A program made the translations under genes and the position numbers. Of a stretch of 64,000 nt of DNA, positions 1,290 through 64,000 are shown in pieces (position 1 is the first letter of the stretch; the number at the start of each line of letters is the position of its first letter). Under the pieces are notes generated by a model. That model saw nothing but the letters and a program-made list of their open reading frames with translations. It did not search any database and was not told the origin of the DNA. Location of the stretch: the NCBI GenBank assembly GCA_965240325.2, contig OZ251239.1, positions 1,550,001 to 1,614,000 on the forward strand, read 5' to 3'. This stretch comes from Rebecca billardiae RCC1528. Its lineage: Eukaryota > Protista > Haptophyta.

Positions 1290-1668
1290 TGGGGTGCGCG
1301 TCGGGCAGGCCCAAGAAGATGCGCAGCATCATGTTCAGGCCCACTAGGCCCAGCGCCTCGATCACCACCTGCTTCTTCGCTGTGTTGATCATCTTCACTG
1401 CCGCGGTTCGCGCCGAGTTTGACTGGCGGCCGCACGCCCCGGCGGCGGGCGCGGCCCGTGCGCTCGCCGTCCTGACGCGGCGGCGGTCCTGGATGCACTG
1501 CGGCACCTGGCCTGAACCCGCGTGCCACGCCACGCGCCGCCGCCGGGCGAGGCGTCGGCGGCGGCCGCCTCCGCCGCCCACGCGGCACGTCGCGCCATCT
1601 GGTGCGAGCCGACCAGTCCTGAGCAACCGCTTCAAAATCAAATAGCCTGATCGAGTACCCCCATAAAT

Positions 1669-1998
1669 TAAGATCGAATGGATATAGATAGCGATTACGG
1701 TTATCGAATGGAGATAGAAAGCGATTACGGTTATCTTTGTTTTGGCAATAATCAGAACTACACGACGAGATGATAGCGCGCGTTTACGGCGATCTCCATT
1801 AGCGGGCGTAGCTCCCGTAGCTCCAATTACCGGTTTTGCTGGGATCCTTCGCGAGTAAGATCGAATGGAGATAGATAGTGATCACGGTTATCTCTGCTTC
1901 GGCAAGAATCGAAACCAAACGAGATAATAGCGTTTACGGCGATCTCCATTAGGTCGTAGCTCCCGTAGCTCCAATTAAACGGTTTTGCTGGGATCCTT
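1669..1998. repeat. AT-richer diverged tandem duplication (~180 and ~145 bp)
   Basis: taagatcgaatgga...gtagctcccgtagctccaatta...ggttttgctgggatcctt occurs at 1669-1849 and 1856-1998. Confidence 0.85.
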
Positions 1999-3667: not shown

Positions 3668-4340
3668 CGCGCGCGCGCGCTTGACGTCAGCATATCCGAT
3701 CAGTGTCGTAGAGTACTGCGCGATGGCGATCGGCCGATCCGCGTCGAATAATCGATCGCGTCGAGTGATCAGTCGTCCGATGATCATAATAATATATTCA
3801 TATATATATATATATCGATGATATCTTCATCGAATATCGTCAGTACTAGCCGCGCAGCAGTCGTCGACTGCTGGCGCACGATGAATCAGTAGCAGCATGA
3901 GCCAGCGCGCACTATGACTGATCAAGCAGTAATTATTAGAGATCGATGATGATAGCAGATTTGAGGCACGTGTGACGTGAGTATCAGTATACAGGCGCAA
4001 TCGCGGGCAATAAGTCCTTAGAGCTGTCATGTTAAGAAACTGGGGCTTGCTATCTGCGCGGATCTGGCCTAGAAACTGAGACGCTATAGCGATAGTGGCT
4101 GGTTCGCTATACGCATAGTCACACTATAAGAAACCGGGAAGCGTCCTACGTCGTCCCGGCTGACGAGTGGTCCGCCGAGGGCGAGGCGCAGTCGGCCCGT
4201 CGGGGACGCGGCGCGCGGCCCGACTACGAGTACAGGCCAAGTCCCGACTGGCGACTTCTCCTGATGACTGACTCCTGGCCAGTGCGCCGCAGCATCCATG
4301 CAACATCACTTGCCAGCAGATTTGCTCCCAAAAGGCCCAA

Positions 4341-28488: not shown

Positions 28489-28846
28489 CGAGGACTGATG
28501 GCCGCGCTGCTACTGGCGCGCGCGGCCGTCCGACTAACTACTGCCGACGACCGCCTGATGGTCGTCGGACTGCTGCGCGTATCGTCAATTTATATTATTC
28601 CGTCATCAAATCAATATAATGTCGTTATATTATGAATATATAATATATATAGCTATATATAGCTAGCTATATAGCTATATATATATACACAGCAACGACT
28701 TCTTTTTTAAAGCGGCCGTTAGCGTGTCCATCGGCCGGATTATTTTACGGAAAATTACTATGCGCTGCGCGCGCGCGCCCAGCGGGCGGCGCGCGCGCGC
28801 GACTAGTCCCCCCTGCATGCCCTAACCGTCAGCTGCCTGATTCCCG

Positions 28847-31800
28847 CTACCCAGCCCCGCTGCCGTCGCGCGCGACATCCGCGCCGTCGCTCACCGTCGC
28901 CGAGGCCGAGCGCGCCGCCGCCCTCAATTTGCTCTTGAGTGCCGACAAGTCCTCCTCCGGAAGCCCAGCCTCCTCGCGCACGAGCTTGCGCGCCGCGATG
29001 TACTCGTCGACCAGGTCGTGCGCGCCGGCCTTCGCCTTGCGCTGCCATTCGCGCTGCCGCTTGCCCTCCTTCTTCAGCCAGAGCCGCCGCACCTTGTCGC
29101 CGAACTCCTCCTCCGCCCACGTCGCAAGCGACACGCGGCGCAGGAGCTGCGCGGCCGTCGAGATGTGCGGCTGCACCGTCGACTTCTTCCCCTCGGCATA
29201 CTCGCGGACGAACGAGTCGAGCGACTTGCGCGCGTTCACGAGCGGCATCGCCCGCTTGGTCACCTGCACGAAGTGCTCCTGCACCTGCTCGTCCGCGAGC
29301 TGCACGAGGTGGCCCCACCGCCTGATCAGCAGAGGCAAGACGAACCGCGCGATCGTCTTGTACTGCGAGGTGACCGGCTTGAGGACGAACAGGTCGAGCG
29401 CCTCGACCCACGCCGTCGCGGCTGCCTCAACCTCGTCCGCACGCTTCGCGCGGCCATCGTCATCGTCCGTGTAGCCGCGCGAGGAGACGAGGTCGTGCAG
29501 CTGCCACGTGAGCATGAGCAGGCGGCAGAAGAGTGCCATGCGCGGCATGTCCGCGATCTCGGCCTTCAACTGCGCCTCGTCGTCAAAGCCGATCTCGTCC
29601 ATCATCTCGCGCTCCTCCTCGTCCTGCATGTCCGAGATGCGCGCGTCCTCGTCGCCGCTGTCCGCCGCGCCCGCGCTGCTCGCGCCGTCGAGATCCGCGT
29701 CGATCTTCCACACGACCTGCACCAACGCCCAGAAGACCGCGTGCGTGCGCAGCAGCGAGATGCCGTCGCCGCGGAGGTCGGGCACGCCGATCTCGTTGGT
29801 GCGCGTGCGCCGCTTGGGCACTCGCACAGGCACGCCCGCGTTCTTGAACAGGACGATCAGGTCGTACTTGGTGAGCGGCGCGTCGCGGCCGTACAGCTCG
29901 TCCACCTCCCTCCACAGCGCCGACAGCACCGGCTTGAAAGTGTCGTGCTTGAAGTGCATGATGCCGGGGAAGTAGTTGACGTGCTCGAGCTCCAGCTGCG
30001 GTAGCAGCCACTGGTTCTCGTGCAGCTTCTGGTCGACGATGCGCTCGGCGTCCTTCGAGTCGTCGGCGAGAAGGCGGCGGCGCTTGGTCATCTCGGCGTC
30101 GCACTCGCCCTGGTCGGCAGGCGTGACCTTGCACGCAGGGCACGTCACGCCCGGGTCCGCGTGGCACAGCGCGCGCGCGCGCTTGTACGTGCGCAGCCGC
30201 CACTGAGGCGAGCCGCCGTCCGCGCCCGCCTCCTTGACCGCCCACACGTTGAAGCGGAGCGGCGAGACGTTGTGCGAGCCCTGGCCGGCGAGGCTGGCAA
30301 GGTTGACATAATCGCCGGTGTACGTGATGATGGCCTTCTGCTCCTCCGCGTAGTCGGCCGCCTCGCCGCCGCCGCCAAAACCGCCGCCGGCCGCGCCGCC
30401 CGCCGCGCCGGCAGCGCCGGCCGCGCCGGCCGCGCCGGCCGCGCCGGCCGCGCCGCCGGCCGCGGCGGCCGCGGCGGCCGCGGCGGCCGCGGCGGCCGCG
30501 CCGCCGGCCGTGCCCGCGCTCGGGTTGCCAGCCGCGCTGCTCGCCGCGCCGCCGGCCGCGCCACCGGCCGCGCGGACGCCAGCGCCGGCGGTGCCGCCAG
30601 CCACGCCGCTGCCGCTGCCGCTGCCGCCCGCGCCGCCCGCGCCGCCCGCGCCGCCGCCAGCGCCCGCGCCCGCGTTACCAGCCGCGCCGCCGGCCGCGCC
30701 GCCGGCCGCGCGGACGCCAGCGCCGGCGGTGCCGCCAGCCACGCCGCTGCCGCTGCCGCCCGCGCCGCCCGCGCCGCCCGTGCCGCCGGCCGTGCCGCCG
30801 GCCGTGCCGCCGGCCGCGCCGCCGGCCGCGCCGCGGGCCTCGCCGCGGCCCGCGCCGCCGGCCGCGCCGGCTGTGACGGCCGCGGCCGCGCCGCCGGCCG
30901 CGCCGGCCACACGTGCGGTGGCGGCAGCAGGCGGCGTCGGTCGCGGCGGAAGCAGGCCGCTCCGGATCACGTCATTGATCGCGTCGGCGTGCGCACTCCA
31001 TAACTCGGACATGTCCGAGTCCGGCCGCTCCGAGATGGCGATCGCCTCTGACGACGCGAGCGCGCCGTAGTTGACGCCCCAGCCGTTGCGCACGATGGCG
31101 ATCGTGGCCGTGCGCGAGTGAGCCGTGTTGCCCGCGTCCGCCGAGAGGAGGAGGACGTGCGGATGCCCGCGCGGGCGCGCGGACTTGCCGTTGCGCTCCG
31201 AGCGATCCAGCACGGCGTGCACGGCCTGCGCCCACGGCCGCGCCGCCGACTCGCTGCCGATCATGAGCACGCCCGCGCCCGCGTGCTCGCGATCGCGCTG
31301 CGCGACCTCTCGAGAGCCAGCCGCCGGCGGCGGGATCGGGTGGCGGATCGGCTCGCGGCCGAAGCCGCCGCGGAAGACGGTGCGAGCCGAGTGCTCGCCC
31401 GTCACCGGGTGGATCTCCTTCCCCACCCACTCGCGCCACGTGTCGAACTGCGCGTCCGTGACGTTCTTCGAGACGAGGTAGCCGGCGACGTCGTGGTGCG
31501 TCTGATGAGATTGAATCTCGCGCACAACGCCCACTGCGCCGCGGCGCTGCTGGAGGTAGGCGTGCCTCGCCCACGGCTTGCGCGAGCCGTCGTCTGCGCC
31601 CTCGAGCATCTCGTGCAGCACGAGGTCCATCACGTCGTCGGGCGTGCCACGCAGGATGTGCTCGATATGGTCCGCCTCCCCCCGCCTGCGCTTGCGGCAC
31701 GCGTTGCTCGAGACCGAGAGAGATGGGCGCTGAGCGCGCTGCCGATGAGCGCCGTCCAGCCCGTTCAGCTCGGCGAGGTGCTCGAACTTGCCGGCGGCTC

Positions 31801-33592
31801 GGTCGGCGCGCTTGCGCGCGGCGTCCTTGTCGCGCTTGAGCTCGACAAGCTGCGACTGCTGCTCGTCGCAGAGCGACTGGGCGTGCGCGCACTGCTGCTC
31901 GAGCAGCTGCTGCGCGTGCAGCGCAGCCGCGAGCTCGTGCTCGACGCCGCTCAGCGCGTCAGCGGCGATGTGCTCGGTCGCGGTGAGGCGGCGCTCCAAC
32001 TCGAGGGCCCGATCGCGCTGCGCGTCGGCGGCGCGCTGCGCAGCTGCGGCCCGCGCGTTCGCCTCTTCGAGATCGCGCCGAAGCTTCGCCTGCGCCTGCT
32101 CCGCCTCGGCGTCGTGGCGGGTGCGCGCATCCGCGCTGTGCCCGGCGCGGTACCCGGCGAGCACAGCGCGCCTCTCCGCGGCAGCAGCGGCGGCGCGCGC
32201 GGCGGCGATCCGGTCGAGGGCCTCGCGCTCGATGTTCTCGCACTCGAGCTTGACGGCGGCGATCACCACGTCGAGAACCGGCTCGAGATCGACGGCGGCC
32301 GAGTTGACGATGTCCTCGCGCTGCCGCACCGCGTCGTCGCGCTCGCGCTCGAGCTCGCCGTTGAAGTGCTCGAGCTCGGTCACACGTGTGCGCAGCGAGG
32401 TGAGCTCGAGCTCGGAAGGGACGCTGCGCGTGCTGTGCGAGCGCCGCAACTGCTGCTCGAGCTCGGCCACGTGCTGCAGCTCGGCCATGCGCCTTCGACC
32501 CCGTGCTGTCTGCTCGTCCGCCTCTGCCTCGGGCGTCGGCGCCACGCTGCCAGCCGAGCGCGTGAGAGGCCGCTGGCGGGTGGGCGCGGCCGAGAGCAGC
32601 ACGGCAGGCGGCGGCGACATGAAGGCGGGCGAGGCGACGGCAGGTGACCTCGGCGGCAGCAGCTCTTCCGCCGACCCACCGACGAACGGCTGCGCCGCCG
32701 CGCCAGCGAGGAGGAGTGGCGGCGCGGGCTGGCGGGAGGCGCTGCGCGTGACCGCGGGCGACGGCGCAGCGGCAGCAGGAAAGCTCAAGGCGGAGGAGGC
32801 GTTGGTAGTGGCGGGCGAGAAGACGAGGTGGTCGGCGTGAGCGGGAAGAGACGAGAAGCGGGCAGCGACGACGGCGGGAGACAAATCGGCGGCGGCGGCG
32901 GCGGCTGATGCCGCCGCCTCGCCGCCATCAGCTCGAAGGAGAGCGAGCGCGCGCGCGGTCGGTGGACGGGCGGCATCATGCGGCGAGGACAGCGGCTGCG
33001 GCTGCGGCCGCGGCCGCGGCCGCGGCCGCGGCTGCGGCGGCTGCACGAGCGGCGGAGGCAGGTGCGGAGGCGCCGACGGCAGCTGCGGCGGTGGCGGAAG
33101 CGACGGCAGCGGCGGCGGCCCCAACGGAGGCAGCGGCTGGGTGTCCGCGACCGCGTAGGGCATCACGGCGGCGGACGATGGATCGGATGGCGCGTCGGCG
33201 CAGAGGCCGGGCGTGAGACCGAGGACTGGAACATGCGAGAGAGGCTGAGAATGAGAATGCAGATGGGCATGCGTGGGATCGAGGGCAGAGAGATCGAGGG
33301 GGGGATGCGGCGCGACCGCGCCGTCACCAGCTGGCGCGCGACGCCATCGGGCGCTGCTCGCTGCTCGGCGAGTGGCGGTCAGCTGCTCGCGCTGCGCGCG
33401 GCGCGCTTTCCAGTCCGCGCGCTTGCGCCGTGAGACGTCGGACTCGGGCGGCGCCGCCGGTGCCGCCGCGGCGGGCGCCGCGGCAGGCGCTGCCGGCGGC
33501 GCGCCCGTGAGCTCCGACGGGCCCTTCGTCACAGACGGCGTGCGCCGCCAGCCCCGCCTCCGCCGCGGCGCATCGAGACGCCCTGCGCGCAC
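28847..33592 (-). CDS. Putative RAG1/Transib-like DDE transposase (first in-frame ATG at 33163)
   Basis: Ordered motifs LSADAG, ERPDSDMSEL, YTGDY..L...G, CPAC, FPGIMH, TSQYKTIARFVLPLLIRRWGHLVQLADEQVQE; N-terminal Pro-rich and coiled-coil region. Confidence 0.72.
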   Translation of the reverse strand: MRAGRLDAPRRRRGWRRTPSVTKGPSELTGAPPAAPAAAPAAAAPAAPPESDVSRRKRADWKARRAQREQLTATRRAASSARWRRAPAGDGAVAPHPPLDLSALDPTHAHLHSHSQPLSHVPVLGLTPGLCADAPSDPSSAAVMPYAVADTQPLPPLGPPPLPSLPPPPQLPSAPPHLPPPLVQPPQPRPRPRPRPQPQPLSSPHDAARPPTARALALLRADGGEAAASAAAAAADLSPAVVAARFSSLPAHADHLVFSPATTNASSALSFPAAAAPSPAVTRSASRQPAPPLLLAGAAAQPFVGGSAEELLPPRSPAVASPAFMSPPPAVLLSAAPTRQRPLTRSAGSVAPTPEAEADEQTARGRRRMAELQHVAELEQQLRRSHSTRSVPSELELTSLRTRVTELEHFNGELERERDDAVRQREDIVNSAAVDLEPVLDVVIAAVKLECENIEREALDRIAAARAAAAAAERRAVLAGYRAGHSADARTRHDAEAEQAQAKLRRDLEEANARAAAAQRAADAQRDRALELERRLTATEHIAADALSGVEHELAAALHAQQLLEQQCAHAQSLCDEQQSQLVELKRDKDAARKRADRAAGKFEHLAELNGLDGAHRQRAQRPSLSVSSNACRKRRRGEADHIEHILRGTPDDVMDLVLHEMLEGADDGSRKPWARHAYLQQRRGAVGVVREIQSHQTHHDVAGYLVSKNVTDAQFDTWREWVGKEIHPVTGEHSARTVFRGGFGREPIRHPIPPPAAGSREVAQRDREHAGAGVLMIGSESAARPWAQAVHAVLDRSERNGKSARPRGHPHVLLLSADAGNTAHSRTATIAIVRNGWGVNYGALASSEAIAISERPDSDMSELWSAHADAINDVIRSGLLPPRPTPPAAATARVAGAAGGAAAAVTAGAAGGAGRGEARGAAGGAAGGTAGGTAGGTGGAGGAGGSGSGVAGGTAGAGVRAAGGAAGGAAGNAGAGAGGGAGGAGGAGGSGSGSGVAGGTAGAGVRAAGGAAGGAASSAAGNPSAGTAGGAAAAAAAAAAAAAAGGAAGAAGAAGAAGAAGAAGGAAGGGFGGGGEAADYAEEQKAIITYTGDYVNLASLAGQGSHNVSPLRFNVWAVKEAGADGGSPQWRLRTYKRARALCHADPGVTCPACKVTPADQGECDAEMTKRRRLLADDSKDAERIVDQKLHENQWLLPQLELEHVNYFPGIMHFKHDTFKPVLSALWREVDELYGRDAPLTKYDLIVLFKNAGVPVRVPKRRTRTNEIGVPDLRGDGISLLRTHAVFWALVQVVWKIDADLDGASSAGAADSGDEDARISDMQDEEEREMMDEIGFDDEAQLKAEIADMPRMALFCRLLMLTWQLHDLVSSRGYTDDDDGRAKRADEVEAAATAWVEALDLFVLKPVTSQYKTIARFVLPLLIRRWGHLVQLADEQVQEHFVQVTKRAMPLVNARKSLDSFVREYAEGKKSTVQPHISTAAQLLRRVSLATWAEEEFGDKVRRLWLKKEGKRQREWQRKAKAGAHDLVDEYIAARKLVREEAGLPEEDLSALKSKLRAAARSASATVSDGADVARDGSGAG

Positions 33593-34386
33593 ACCTTGAG
33601 CAGCTCGCCGCTCACGTCAGCGCGCCCCTTCTCCTTCTTGAAGCGCCATGGCTGCATCAGCGCGTAGCGCTCGGCGTCGACGCTCACGCCGCCCTGCGCG
33701 TCCTGTGGCGCGTGCAGGCCGCCCTGCGCGTTGAGCGAGATCACGCCCACGCGCACGTGCGCGAACTGCTGGTACGCGCCGTCCGGATCGAGCCGATGCA
33801 TCTCGGTGTGCTCGATCGAGAGCGAGTGCACCGTGTTGATCGCCGAGAGGTGCCGGTCCGTGCGCGCGCCGCCGAGCGCGTTCGCCCGCAGCGGCTTCGG
33901 GACGCGGCGCATGCCCAGGTTGAGCCACGTCGAGATGCGCTCGGGCTGGTACGAGCTCACGGTGCGCCGCGTGCGGTCCTTCTCTCGCGTCTCGTGCACG
34001 ACGCCCTGGTCGTCGAGCGAGGTGAACATCGGCGAGTAGAGGGCGTCACGCGGGAACAGCGCCAGCTTGGCCTTGCGCAGCAGGTTGCCCTTCTTCCGGC
34101 TGCCCTTGATGGCGACGAAGTTGTTGACCTTGCGCTTGACCTCCGCCAGGTAGTTCTCGTTCGGCATGATCGAGTGGTCCACCTCGCTCGCCGCCTCGCG
34201 CGCGCGCAGCATGAGCGTCTCGTGCTCAGCCGCCTTCTCCGCGGCCGCCGCGGCCATGCGCCGCCGCACAGATGCGGCAGAGACCTTGCGCCCGATGCCG
34301 TAGCCGCCCTTCCGCTGCAGCTTGACCTTCTTCGGCTTCGCGCAGGAACGCTTGCCCTTGCCCACGGTAAGCACAGCCGTCGTCAT
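33529..34386 (-). CDS. Transposon ORF1, basic protein of unknown function (may be the frameshifted N-terminus of the transposase)
   Basis: 285-aa ATG ORF inside the TIRs, Lys/Arg-rich, overlapping the long ORF by 64 bp. Confidence 0.7.
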   Translation of the reverse strand: MTTAVLTVGKGKRSCAKPKKVKLQRKGGYGIGRKVSAASVRRRMAAAAAEKAAEHETLMLRAREAASEVDHSIMPNENYLAEVKRKVNNFVAIKGSRKKGNLLRKAKLALFPRDALYSPMFTSLDDQGVVHETREKDRTRRTVSSYQPERISTWLNLGMRRVPKPLRANALGGARTDRHLSAINTVHSLSIEHTEMHRLDPDGAYQQFAHVRVGVISLNAQGGLHAPQDAQGGVSVDAERYALMQPWRFKKEKGRADVSGELLKVCAQGVSMRRGGGGAGGARRL

Positions 34387-35483
34387 TGCTGCGCGCGGCG
34401 AGCGCGGTCCCGCGCGGCCGCCGCCGGGCGCAGCCGCAGCAAGTTAGTCTGATGCAAATTCCCGGTCACCCATGCAAAAGTAAGCGTTCCCGCTGAGCAT
34501 GTGCGTGGATCACGAGTAACCCGCCGCCTGAATACAAACTCCGCGCCCCTCCATACACTTCCTGCATCCCCGCGCGCGGCGGCGTGCAGGCGGGCGCAGA
34601 TTCGCACCGTGTTACGAACAGACCTAGCAAAGTAGATCGGCGTGGCGGGTCGGGACGCGGAGCGGGTGCGGGGCAGGTGGGGGATAGGTTGGGGAACACC
34701 CGCGATTAGAGCACCGGTGGCGCAGCGGCGACGTGGACGCCGCCACACGCGCACGCACGGCGCACGCGCGCACCGGGACTTTCAACTTCGCGTCGGAGCT
34801 CTGGACGACCGTCGGTTGGTCCGAGCGGCGCGAGGAGGCTCTCGGGATTGTGGCCGGACGCCCGGGTTGAGCCGTTAACGGCCGAAAATCAATTTGTTGG
34901 AGTTTCCTTAACGGCCGCTTTAAAAAAGAAATCGTTGCTGTGTATATATATCTGATGATTAGATGCGGATTCTGCTGATTGACTTGGCCGATTGATGACA
35001 TCATCACTTAGTTAAATATAGCTATATATCTGCTATTACTATACTATATATATTATAAATAATATATATATATATATATATATACTATACTTATACATAC
35101 AGTGACACGAGCTTGCGCACTGGCGGCCGCCTGCTACAGTAAAATACACGCTGATATGCTCTGCTTATTGTCATCGTCTTGACCGTCGGCGTTGGACCGG
35201 TCTGAGAGTGAGACTGATCCAGTCATAGCTAGTGATTCTGAGTGATGGCGGGCCGTAAGCCTAAGCCTAAGGCCGGTGCGCGAGTGTCGGCGCGGGGACG
35301 ACGGCCGCCGGCCGGCGCGGACCGGCTCCAGGCGCGTCGAGCGCCTGCACTGTCAGTCACATGATGTGAGTGAGGCCGCGAGCCATCGTCAGCCTCGCGC
35401 GTCGTTGTTCATCATGCTCGCGGCGGATGCTCTGTGCGCCGCGTTCCGCGGCCGCCCGGTGGTCGGCCCGTGCCACGCCAGCC

Positions 35484-55161: not shown

Positions 55162-58113
55162 GGCGGCGTGTGCTGGGCTCGGAGCCGAGCGCGGGGGGCC
55201 TCTTTCGCTCTTGCACGCAGATAAAGCGTGCAACCTGTTCAATATTGCGGTCATCGGGGGAGGGCTTCATCCGAGCGCCGAGGACCCCTCTTCTTTCGAT
55301 CCAACTTGAAGACTGGATCGTGTGGGTAAGAAGCGCGCCGGGCACTCGCGAGAAATCGCGGCAGCCCACACATAAGCGGCCGAGAAATCGCTGCGGCCGA
55401 CCGGCGTGTTCTGGCCTTGCACCTCCCCGTTGCTGCGCGGGCGACGATGCCGCGATGCCGCCGCCGCCCGCCCGCTCCGGCCGGCGACTCTGGCATCGTG
55501 GCCGGAGTGACGGCTAGAGCAGAGCGCCGCGCGGCAGAGCGCTGCGCAATCCGCTTGCTGGCCTCGGGCCCCATCGCCGCTGCGCCCGTCGCCGTGGCCA
55601 GCGTCGCGCGCCGTGCACTCACGCACGAGCCCGGCCCTGCCGGCGCGGCGGACGGAACTGCTGCCGGCCGCCCGGGTCACCGCGGGAGCGAGCGGCGAGC
55701 AACGACGGAGAGCTGCACCGCAACGCGCGTGTTCCGGGTTGACGCATCGCCCCCATGCTCTGCGCTGTTGCGCCCAACCCCACGCGCATCGTCCTGGCGC
55801 GCTGCAGGTGTGTCTCGTCACCCAGCACGCGGGGTAGTGTCGCGCGCGAGGACTGCGCGCGTGCACATCGAGGGCTGGCGGGCCCGACGGATGGGGCCCG
55901 AACGAAGGGTGCGACGCGGCGATCTGCCCGAGGTCCAGTCCGAAGCTCACCGCCCGTGCGCGCGCGCTGCCGGTGCGCACAACCGCCCCCGCGAAGGCGC
56001 GGCGCCCGACGCCATGCGAGGGTGCCGCCGAGAGATGGCTGCGTGCGCCCTGCGCGTGGCCGCCGCGCTCCAATGCGGTTTGTCGCGAAGACGCCTTGGC
56101 TCTGGGTCCAGCTCCGAGAGTGGAGAGATTTTACCGGCGAATGCGGGTCGGCCGCTCACTAGCTGCGCGTTCATCTCCCAGCGGTGGTAGAATTACAGAA
56201 TGAGATCGTCAGTTGGAAGCATGCACGGATGGCGCGAGCCGATTGGCTGGGAAGGACGTCGCGACAGCCAGTTTCAATTTTCGCGGGCACAGATAGGAAA
56301 GAGAAGCGTGGGCATCGCGCCGAGGACGCAATCCGAAGATTTTAATCACGTTCGGAAAAGGCGCTCCGCGGCCAATCGCAGCGGGCGCAATCGCGTTGGT
56401 CGTGTGGCTGAAGCGGTAAATTGCTCGCAGTTTTGGTGATCCATTCAAGATACCTTTATCGGGCCTGAAGAATCCAGCCGGCGAGCAAGTGACGAGTCGC
56501 ACGCACTCAAGATACCCTTGCGAAACCATTTCCGGAAAAGTCGTCCGTTATTTGCCGGATTGTGCGGTCCGTGCCAAAAATAGACGCGCATTGACGATGC
56601 ATGCCGCCGGGCGTTGAGCGACTGGCGAGGTCGCCGAATCGCGTGGCGTGGTCCCAGAGAAGGCTGCTGCCAGCCCTGACCAGCTCGCTAGCCATGTCGG
56701 TCGATGATCGCCCTGCCGTTGACAGGCGCGCACACGCCACGCGTACTGCTTAATGCGCGGGCCGGCAGCCGTGTCGGACACGGGCCGGTCGCACCGGCCA
56801 CGACTTCCGCGCAGCCAACATTCAGATCGTCAGACTCACGGCATGTGAGGGCAGACGGAACATTGGTAGGTCTGCGCCCTCGCATGGCATGTCCCAGGTG
56901 TCAGCACGGCCTCCAGAAGGGTGATATTCGCCCACCACTTACCCATCCTTCCCATTGGCACAGCCTCAGCCCTCACGTAAGTCCGACGGCGGCGGCGGCG
57001 TAATGCCGGGTCGCGCGAGGGCGTGGACGTGGACACGAGAGTGGTCGAAAAGTCGGAAGGGAAGCTGTCACTCACGCACACGCGCTCGTATGACCTCACC
57101 AACCTGCCTGCACCACACACACCCGGTGACCCGGCCGTGGCGCTGGGGCCTTGTCTGGGACGGCGCGACACTCTCCGCGAGCTCGGCGCCCGCCCGCCCA
57201 GCCCAGACGGCGGGTACTAGATAACTAGCCGTACTGAGACTACTGTGAGGGGCCCCCAGCCGCAGGGCCAAGGCCAGTATGAGTAGTACAGTAGCCCCGA
57301 GTAGGCGCGTGCGGCCGTGCGGCGAGTGGGTCAGTGATGCGCCCTGAGACCGCGCGCGCGGCGCCCACGAGCCCACGGGCACGGTCGAAGATGCGGGCAG
57401 CCGAACCGCTCACTTAGAGCTAGTTAGATCACATATACATATACATATATATGTATATATATATACTATACATACTATATATAGTATATATAATAATCCC
57501 GATTACTGCCGAGTATTGCATGCGCATATCATCATCATATACGGGCCTCTGGGCCGCCACTATCCGAGGAGGGACACGGCGACACGGTTCTGTCGCGGTT
57601 ACGCGGGTTACGGGTTACAGCAGCCCGCCGGCGGGCCGGGCTGCGGCATCGACTACAAACTCATCTGCTTCATCGCCCAGAGCGCGCTAGGCGGCGCGCT
57701 CACTCTCCAAGCCCCTCTTCTGCAGCTGCGCGCCGCTTGGCCGGCGCGCGGCGACGCGTACTACGACCTCACTTCCTCATCCAGGCGCCCACGCGGGCGC
57801 ACGGGGGCGACAGCCGCGGCTGCCGCTTGCCGGAGCTACTCGCCGCTAGGTCGGCGGGCGGCGACATCGACTACGACCTCACCCTCATCCAAGTGCTCCG
57901 GAATAAGGCGCTCGGCCGCGGCGGCATCTGTCGTCGCCGCCGCGTGCCCCAGGCCGAGGCGGTGCTCCACCCCCGCGGTCCCCGTCCCCGCTCCCGTATG
58001 GGGGCAGGGCTGCGGGTGGCGCACTGTCTGACCTGGACGGAAGGCGCGGATACGCATTCTATGTGTCTGCTGCACTCTGAGCCTGACGCTTGTTCGTTGC
58101 TGCCGCCACGTCG

Positions 58114-58116
<3 letters not shown>

Positions 58117-58203
<87 letters not shown>
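58117..58203. repeat. (TA)n microsatellite
   Basis: About 43 perfect TA units. Confidence 0.98.
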
Positions 58204-58207
<4 letters not shown>

Positions 58208-58275
58208 TATTGAGCAGTGACGGGCCGCCGCGGAATCGGATCAGATTCGTGCCACTCAGCCTGCGACGCCGCCGC

Positions 58276-63535: not shown

Positions 63536-64000
63536 GCGGGTCCAGCGGCCAGATTAATTTTCGAAAAATTACTATGCGCTGCGCGCGCGCCCCTAGGGGG
63601 CGGCGCGCGCGCGCGGCTGGTCCCCCCTGCATGCCCGCACCGTCAGCTGCCTGATTGCCGCTACCCAGCCCCGCTACCGTCGCGCGCGACATCCGCGCCG
63701 TAAATCACCGTCACCGAGCGGTCCTGAGCGCGCCGCCATCAATTTGCTCCTGAGTGATGCCGAAAACTCCTTCTCCGGAAGCCCAGCCTCCTCGCGCAGG
63801 AGCTTGCGCGCCGTCATGCACTCCGCGATCAGGTCGATCGCGTCGGTCTCCGCCCTGCGCTGCCATTCGCCTGCCGCTTGGCGTACTTCTTCAGCCAGAG
63901 CCGCCGCACCTTGTCGCCGAACTCCTCTGCCCACGTCGCAAGCGACACGCGGCGCACGAGCTGCGCGACCGTCGAGATGTGCGGCTCCGCCGTCGACTTC
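63536..64000 (-). mobile_element. Diverged, decayed copy of the 3' end of the CACAG transposon (runs off the window)
   Basis: Colinear with ~28722-29186; 1-bp and 3-bp deletions in the coding part; TIR not seen. Confidence 0.88.

Follow-up and report, generated by a model that had tools for sequence, protein, structure and literature searches.

The protein RAG1 assembles the genes of antibodies and T-cell receptors and descends from transposases of the Transib type. Both the reach of the RAG1 fold across eukaryotes and its ancestral features are still being mapped. Here, we describe a DNA transposon from the haptophyte Rebecca billardiae RCC1528, situated in a stretch of 64,000 nucleotides (contig OZ251239.1 of assembly GCA_965240325.2, positions 1,550,001 to 1,614,000 of the forward strand) that in its entirety is called the window. 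The original prediction, made from the sequence of the window, had ascribed to this element ends resembling a recombination signal sequence (RSS) heptamer and a RAG1-like transposase.

RAG1-related transposases are found in a larger clade, CMCT (CACTA, Mirage, Chapaev and Transib), which unites EnSpm/CACTA, Mirage, Chapaev and Transib with Plavaka, ESTA and Lanisha (Kojima 2025, PMC12730594). Typical traits of this clade are CA..TG termini, target duplications of 2-5 bp, and two motifs, C(2)C and H(3-4)H (PMC12730594). ESTA, from rust fungi, generates TA duplications; the resemblance of its transposase to RAG1 emerges only with HHpred (PMC12730594). Among algae, Aureococcus contains a bona fide RAG1L/RAG2L transposon with 5-bp duplications (Tao et al. 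2022, PMC9435367). For relatives of Transib, a 2026 preprint (10.64898/2026.08.26.747230) reports duplications of 5 bp, of 3 bp and of TA.

We consider it probable that the window holds an autonomous-looking cut-and-paste transposon of a lineage that could not be assigned by sequence to any described family, and that belongs by structure to the RAG1/Transib-CACTA-Mirage-Chapaev supergroup. The supergroup is already known; what is new is the lineage, together with its occurrence in algal hosts and the fact that sequence profiles do not detect it. Membership of Transib proper is not supported. The element is placed in the CMCT supergroup instead because the predicted-structure neighbours of its transposase also include CACTA/EnSpm, Plavaka and DUF1280 proteins. 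The proposal that the lineage is undescribed may hold for the family, as no described family was matched by sequence, but not for the supergroup of EnSpm, Mirage, Chapaev and Transib elements, ESTA included, which has been published (PMC12730594).

In certain aspects, the element is close to RAG1, the RAG1L protein of ProtoRAG, and HzTransib. The predicted fold is alike over some 420 residues, which comprise the pre-RNase H, RNase H, ZnC2 and ZnH2 regions and the C-terminal domain. Furthermore, the order D ... D ... CxxC ... E is that of RAG1 and Transib, the ends start with CAC, and cut-and-paste transposition is presumably of the Asp-Asp-Glu (DDE) type. The single-gene layout recalls Transib. 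In other aspects, the element differs from RAG1 and Transib: the family has no detectable sequence homology to them and no His-x4-His before the Glu, conserving a local H/C/C/H set instead, and the window protein has, in addition, a family domain at its N-terminus and a helical region of considerable length. The ends are symmetric, the duplication is not of 5 bp, and there is no RAG2-like gene, nor room for one within the element. With the CMCT clade, the element shares CA..TG termini, reading CACAG...CTGTG in the window copy, as well as a C(2)C located after the second Asp and before the Glu, and probably also short (2-5 bp) duplications. As in ESTA, similarity to RAG1 is visible only to structure-aware methods, and the TA duplications of ESTA fit the window copy. 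However, ESTA is set apart by description, having rust-fungal hosts as opposed to GC-rich marine algae with haptophyte relatives, and the window element contains neither the H(3-4)H motif nor a TET/JBP passenger gene. AanRAGL of Aureococcus anophagefferens is likewise of the RAG type and comes from a GC-rich alga that is unicellular; its bipartite ends begin with CAC, and it shows signs of having been active recently. However, its RAG1L and RAG2L genes are recognisable, its ends are asymmetric and its duplications measure 5 bp, none of which is seen in the window element.

The placement is carried by the predicted fold. An AlphaFold2 model of residues 632-1581, built with the family alignment, has a predicted template modelling score (pTM) of 0.62, with the core mostly above 90 in predicted local distance difference test (pLDDT) and a Gly/Ala tract disordered; the model of P0041, a compact relative of 646 aa from an MMETSP transcriptome, has a pLDDT of 77.7 and a pTM of 0.75. 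In Foldseek comparisons with the PDB, the top 42 matches of the window model are all RAG1, amphioxus RAGL (BbRAGL) or HzTransib (best E-value 5e-3, probability 1.0), and the top 44 of the P0041 model are all RAG1 or BbRAGL (best E-value 7e-6). This is the outcome of the check that had been proposed for an RNase H-like DDE fold. VIA-align Z scores for the window model and P0041, respectively, are 19.1 (422 residues, RAG1 480-1007) and 16.7 to RAG1, 16.1 and 15.2 to BbRAGL, and 15.0 and 13.9 to HzTransib. Among other folds, the P element transposase ranks next at 9.3 and 9.6, and ISCth4 (7.9) and Hermes (7.2; range 7.0-7.2) are listed for the window model and are not among the matches listed for P0041. 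Thus, a fold that is RAG1-like, including the helical zinc-binding insertion and the C-terminal domain, is well supported by prediction. In the window model, D819, D1094 and E1435 appear at the positions expected of an RNase H-type DDE triad in which a large helical insertion precedes the Glu. The assignment to the Transib/RAG/CMC radiation is upheld, and so is a duplication that is not of 5 bp.

Alignment-independent features from a protein language model point in the same direction: among named families, RAG1 and Transib-like clusters come out on top, with scores to RAG1 clusters of 0.90 for the window protein and 0.94 for P0041 (169-182 shared features). The shape search in the ESM Atlas gives a broader picture. 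For the window model the nearest entries are unnamed eukaryotic families, one with plant members, followed by RAG1 fragments (template modelling score by row 0.58-0.72) and then by Transposase_21 (CACTA) clusters and one DUF1280 cluster. For P0041, Transposase_21, DUF1280 and Plavaka are among the listed neighbours and no RAG1 row is listed. To our knowledge, no structure of a CACTA, Mirage or Chapaev transposase is present in the PDB, and therefore RAG1 may simply be the nearest solved relative.

The protein belongs to a family. When 1.84 billion representatives were searched exhaustively by phmmer, with the C-terminal 506 residues as query, 31 relatives were obtained, 14 of them with E-values below 1e-10. 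They originate from marine metagenomes (JGI, ENA), MMETSP transcriptomes and one Logan assembly, and two are gene models of the haptophyte Pavlovales sp. CCMP2436. No other species was named among the relatives looked up, most of which are metagenome or transcriptome fragments. No Pfam domain occurs in any of the relatives. The two loci of this species (L001 and L002, GCA_026770615.1), whose models KAJ1620815 and KAJ1628803 are annotated as "hypothetical protein", appear to be truncated or decayed family copies, and no convincing inverted ends were found around them.

Conservation was counted in a family alignment of the window protein and its relatives (32-33 rows, many of them fragments; Table 1). 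The motifs on which the likeness to RAG1 was originally based are all found in the 1581-aa open reading frame (ORF), in the order given and at residues 816-1433: LSADAG at 816, ERPDSD at 855, YTGDY at 1091, CPAC at 1151, PGIMH at 1209, SQYKT at 1408 and ADEQVQE at 1433. Besides the three putative catalytic residues, the alignment has a second conserved acidic position at D858. Near the proposed catalytic Glu, E1439 (19/21) and K1446 (18/20) are conserved in a block with the pattern S-Q-Y-x-T ... P ... G ... N-E-Q-x-Q-E ... K, and R1282 and an M-H-x2-H motif (H1213, H1216) are conserved as well. It had been supposed that the CxxC expected after the second Asp was replaced. This has to be corrected, since CPAC is itself a CxxC and a conserved one, although it sits 57 residues after D1094 as compared to about 19 in the RAG1-type arrangement. 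Its cysteines may form a local zinc site with H1144 and H1191; this region of the family profile gives a weak C2H2-finger-like match (ZFP57, E-value 0.55). The absence of the RAG1-type His pair (H-x4-H), in contrast, was correctly read: none occurs just before the proposed catalytic Glu in the family alignment.

Table 1. Features of the transposon and its surroundings in the window (strand in brackets; a point where none applies)
Feature	Position	Strand	Description
Whole transposon	28688..34942	(-)	6255 bp, 73% G+C, gene on minus strand; bounded by inverted ends
Terminal inverted repeat, 3' side of gene	28688..28721	(+)	Starts CACAGCA, ends GCGGCCGTTA
Terminal inverted repeat, 5' side of gene	34909..34942	(-)	33/34 identical to other arm
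(TA)6 left flank	28676..28687	.	Candidate target duplication TA; 4, 6 or 8 bp also possible
(TA)4 right flank	34943..34950	.	Second copy of candidate duplication
Main ORF, 1581 aa	28847..33592	(-)	Pro/Ala-rich stretch, coiled-coil-like helical stretch, predicted RAG1-fold DDE core (residues about 720-1500)
Upstream ORF, 285 aa	33529..34386	(-)	ATG start; overlaps main ORF by 64 nt, other frame
D819 codon, proposed first catalytic Asp	31136..31138	(-)	8/8 conserved, in S-x-D-A-G; predicted strand beta-1 (model 181-191)
Gly/Ala-rich low-complexity insert, residues 885-1075	30368..30940	(-)	Between beta-3/alpha-1 and beta-4 of the model; pLDDT <50
D1094 codon, proposed second catalytic Asp	30311..30313	(-)	11/12 conserved, T-G-D; predicted end of beta-4, after model strand 454-462
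H1144, C1151-x2-C1154, H1191 set (H-x6-C-x2-C-x36-H)	30020..30163	(-)	Conserved 12/13, 14/16, 14/15 and 14/14; candidate zinc site
E1435 codon, proposed catalytic Glu	29288..29290	(-)	22/23 conserved; predicted helix N-terminus (model 805-820)
Second, degenerate partial copy	63536..64000	(+)	88% identical to element positions 35-499; cut by window end

At the level of sequence profiles, none of this kinship is apparent. Pfam and PDB searches with the single ORF sequence returned low-complexity noise only, and a Pfam scan of all 32 family members gave no match to RAG1, Transposase_21, Plavaka or DUF1280 models (PF06918, PF02992 and PF18759 included). The RAG1/Transib models PF26100, PF26101, PF26104 and PF26025 match neither the window protein nor the 32 members nor the family profiles at E-values up to 10, and the whole-core and Glu-motif-block profiles of the family retrieved no RAG1 or Transib chain from the PDB, even at an E-value of 10. 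The motif matches therefore cannot be considered significant, and the link to RAG1 is structural only: from the claim of a RAG1-like transposase, the predicted fold is retained and the motif-by-motif likeness is not. Word-indexed homologue searches returned nothing, probably being swamped by Gly/Ala words, and a cleaned profile led to family members only. Terminal-repeat scans of viral contigs and of bacterial and archaeal genomes gave zero matches; a protein-alignment scan of metagenome contigs gave four loci.

The ends of the element agree with the first description of them. The single mismatch between the 34-bp arms of the terminal inverted repeat is a C versus a T at base 12, and the near-identity of the arms suggests a recent insertion of the window copy. 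Allowing up to 3 mismatches, this end occurs at only two sites in the window and gave 0 matches in 100 window shuffles, in accordance with a DNA transposon bounded by inverted repeats. The terminal heptamer CACAGCA is identical to the RSS heptamer CACAGTG at 5/7 bases, and between the two ends there is no asymmetry of the 12/23 kind. By eye, further copies of CGGCCG(TTA), the core of an inner end motif, can be seen just inside both ends (34872-34890 and 28710-28745); these may be additional transposase-binding sites. The flanks of the element have a G+C content of only 18% and 32%, so that the insertion lies within an AT-rich island, of a kind that makes up less than 1% of the window. Since the left flank closes with (TA)6 and the right flank opens with (TA)4, target duplications of 2, 4, 6 and 8 bp fit and one of 5 bp does not, as was originally noted.

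Evidence that the family moves comes from its relatives, whose termini read CACTG...CAGTG. L003 (JGI Ga0181565_10011449) is a complete relative of 5957 bp, and its 33-bp ends are perfect and start CACTGC. An internal-deletion derivative of this element, 3.46 kb in length, which joins L003 positions about 1293 and 3780, is present in many samples, with near-identical copies on the marine metagenome contigs L005 (124-3586), L006 (100-3553) and L012 (764-4215). This derivative has at least 5 distinct left and at least 6 distinct right flanks, and homology always stops exactly at CAC. Therefore, the family moves and its non-autonomous copies are mobilised. Window-type and L003-type ends both have CACWGC at the terminus and, some 17 nt further inward, a G..G.CGTTA block, a bipartite pattern drawn from these two end types. 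As to the target duplication, a length of 5 bp fits none of the five complete elements (the window copy, L003, L005, L006 and L012). L005 allows 2 bp only (TA), and for L003, L006 and L012 no duplication of 2 bp or more fits, possibly owing to chimeric assembly of a multi-copy repeat. The duplication is thus not of 5 bp and probably of 2 bp.

The proposed targeting of TA microsatellites is not borne out beyond the single window copy. Junction dinucleotides other than TA in the relatives include CA, AT, GC, GG, AG, AA, CC, GA and TT, and in view of this diversity TA is not an obligatory target in the L003-type family. L009 (GCA_046766215.1), which is 76% identical to the window element, borders on AT-rich, non-repetitive sequence, and the dinucleotide adjoining its end is AT. 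On the basis of these two sites, a preference of the window subfamily for AT-rich DNA is plausible.

The gene of the window copy is divided over two ORFs. The upstream one aligns with an N-terminal-domain profile derived from L003, P0025 and P0029, built without the window sequence (hhalign E-value 1.2e-4, 151 collinear columns, probability 55%), and the upstream ORF of L003 aligns with the N-terminus of P0029, a gene model from Pavlovales, with an E-value of 2e-18. Because upstream ORFs align to the N-terminal domains of relatives, this domain can be regarded as a module of the family. Judging from its sequence, the 285-aa ORF likely encodes the module in the window copy, and it is probably joined to the core by splicing. 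A candidate intron GTGAG...CAG, noticed by eye between the two ORFs, was rejected, as its 33 nt are too short and a multiple of three. Within the core, between the first and the second Asp, the Gly/Ala-rich insert of about 190 residues stands where most relatives have a Cys-rich segment. A tandem duplication of roughly 45 residues is discernible by eye in the translation of this tract.

On the basis of this information, it is possible to speculate about the mode of action. The single gene would encode a family-specific N-terminal domain, a low-complexity linker, a coiled-coil-like helical region and a DDE core of RNase H fold, with a predicted domain order identical to that of the RAG1 core. 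The transposase could bind the bipartite ends through the terminal CACWGC and the inner G..G.CGTTA element and cleave exactly at CAC by means of D819, D1094 and E1435. Cleavage would probably proceed via a hairpin intermediate on the flanking DNA, in analogy to RAG1, Transib and hAT, and reinsertion would occur with a short stagger, most likely of 2 bp (TA in the window copy).

Several points weigh against this interpretation. The fold evidence consists of predicted models derived from the shallow and fragmentary alignment described above, and the clustering of D819, D1094 and E1435 in three dimensions is presumed. No sequence-level link was found between the family and any RAG1, Transib or CMC profile, even at an E-value of 10, and index-limited profile searches gave family members only. 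Of the two motifs typical of the CMCT clade, C(2)C is present and H(3-4)H is absent, the family having an H-x2-H elsewhere. The window protein lacks the Cys-rich segment of most relatives. Its two ORFs lie in different frames and may be joined by an intron or a frameshift, and the ratio of nonsynonymous to synonymous substitution rates (dN/dS) between the window copy and L009, 0.70 over 260 codons, suggests weak constraint. A duplication of any length was recognized in just one of the four complete metagenomic relatives. Finally, the family may already be deposited in Repbase or Dfam.

Different placements of the element within or outside the supergroup can be imagined. It might represent an independent, deep lineage of the RAG1 fold in haptophyte-type marine algae, neither Transib nor a named CMC branch, which is still transposing and which has its own zinc site (H1144/C1151/C1154/H1191) in place of the C2-H2 bridge of RAG1, a private N-terminal domain and a 2-bp stagger. 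We put this forward tentatively, as a possibility rather than an expectation. If true, the lineage would be an outgroup to Transib plus RAG1 and help to polarise the ancestral features of the RAG1 core.

It seems rather unlikely that the element is a very divergent but true member of Transib on the RAG1 branch, using the mechanism of HzTransib with a shortened target stagger. Such a position would account for the top PDB matches, which are confined to RAG1, RAGL and Transib and stand well apart from other transposases, for the language-model neighbourhood of RAG1 and Transib-like clusters, for the heptamer with its 5/7 identity to that of the RSS, and for the single gene; 3-bp and TA duplications have moreover been reported among Transib relatives (10.64898/2026.08.26.747230). 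However, with no CMC structure known to be solved the PDB cannot discriminate here, and in the Atlas search the top rows for P0041 include Transposase_21, Plavaka and DUF1280 and no RAG1 cluster. The Pfam RAG1 models match 0/32 members, the His pair before the Glu is missing, the ends are symmetric and a 5-bp duplication fits no copy.

Unlikely, too, and to be ranked slightly lower, is that a CMCT lineage which already has a name (ESTA, Mirage with its 2-bp duplications, or Lanisha) has merely been met in new hosts, so that only the host range would be extended. The TA flanks of the window copy and of L005 are compatible with this, as ESTA in rust fungi has been described with these traits; DUF1280-bearing clusters are among the nearest by features and by shape, and the cluster closest in the Atlas, a eukaryotic family without a name, has members from plants. 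On the other hand, a search of 1.84 billion representatives produced just 31 relatives, with Pavlovales sp. CCMP2436 as the sole named species among those looked up, and no member matches PF06918, PF02992 or PF18759.

An element of the Tc1/mariner or hAT type, with a likeness to RAG1 that reflects the common RNase H fold only, is very improbable. The window site would accommodate both, with its TA flanks and its possible 8-bp duplication, but Hermes scores far below RAG1 (7.2 as against 19.1), L005 allows only 2 bp, the listed matches include no Tc1/mariner structure, and many junctions differ from TA; both types were ruled out on the fold scores and the L005 duplication. The idea that the long ORF owes its existence to a high G+C content and that its AlphaFold model is an artefact, the element being non-coding or dead, can practically be dismissed: a G+C content of 73% easily gives long ORFs on several frames, and the 190-aa Gly/Ala tract, the dN/dS value and the frame split from the upstream ORF might be taken as signs of it, but homologues in other organisms have conserved D, D, E, Cys and His residues, the core is predicted with confidence in both models, and the relatives include MMETSP transcripts.

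As a lineage probably within the CMCT supergroup by structure, the family shows the RAG1 fold in GC-rich marine algae, in a form wholly missed by sequence searches. Pipelines based on Pfam will miss such elements, or label them "hypothetical", in algal genomes and marine metagenomes. With its intact-looking copies and mobile deletion derivatives, the family furthermore offers a distant comparator, testable at the bench, for the chemistry, end recognition and target stagger of RAG and Transib.

The window contains one further trace of the element, the degenerate copy near its end (Table 1). It carries indels, of 1 nt and 3 nt, that include frameshifting ones, and unrelated sequence with no recognisable terminal inverted repeat stands in place of the 34-bp end. 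Other short AT-rich islands (at most 35% G+C) occur at window positions 1661-1760, 3741-3850, 57381-57550 and 58061-58260, in surroundings of about 70% G+C for the window as a whole, and these are candidate landing sites or intergenic spacers.

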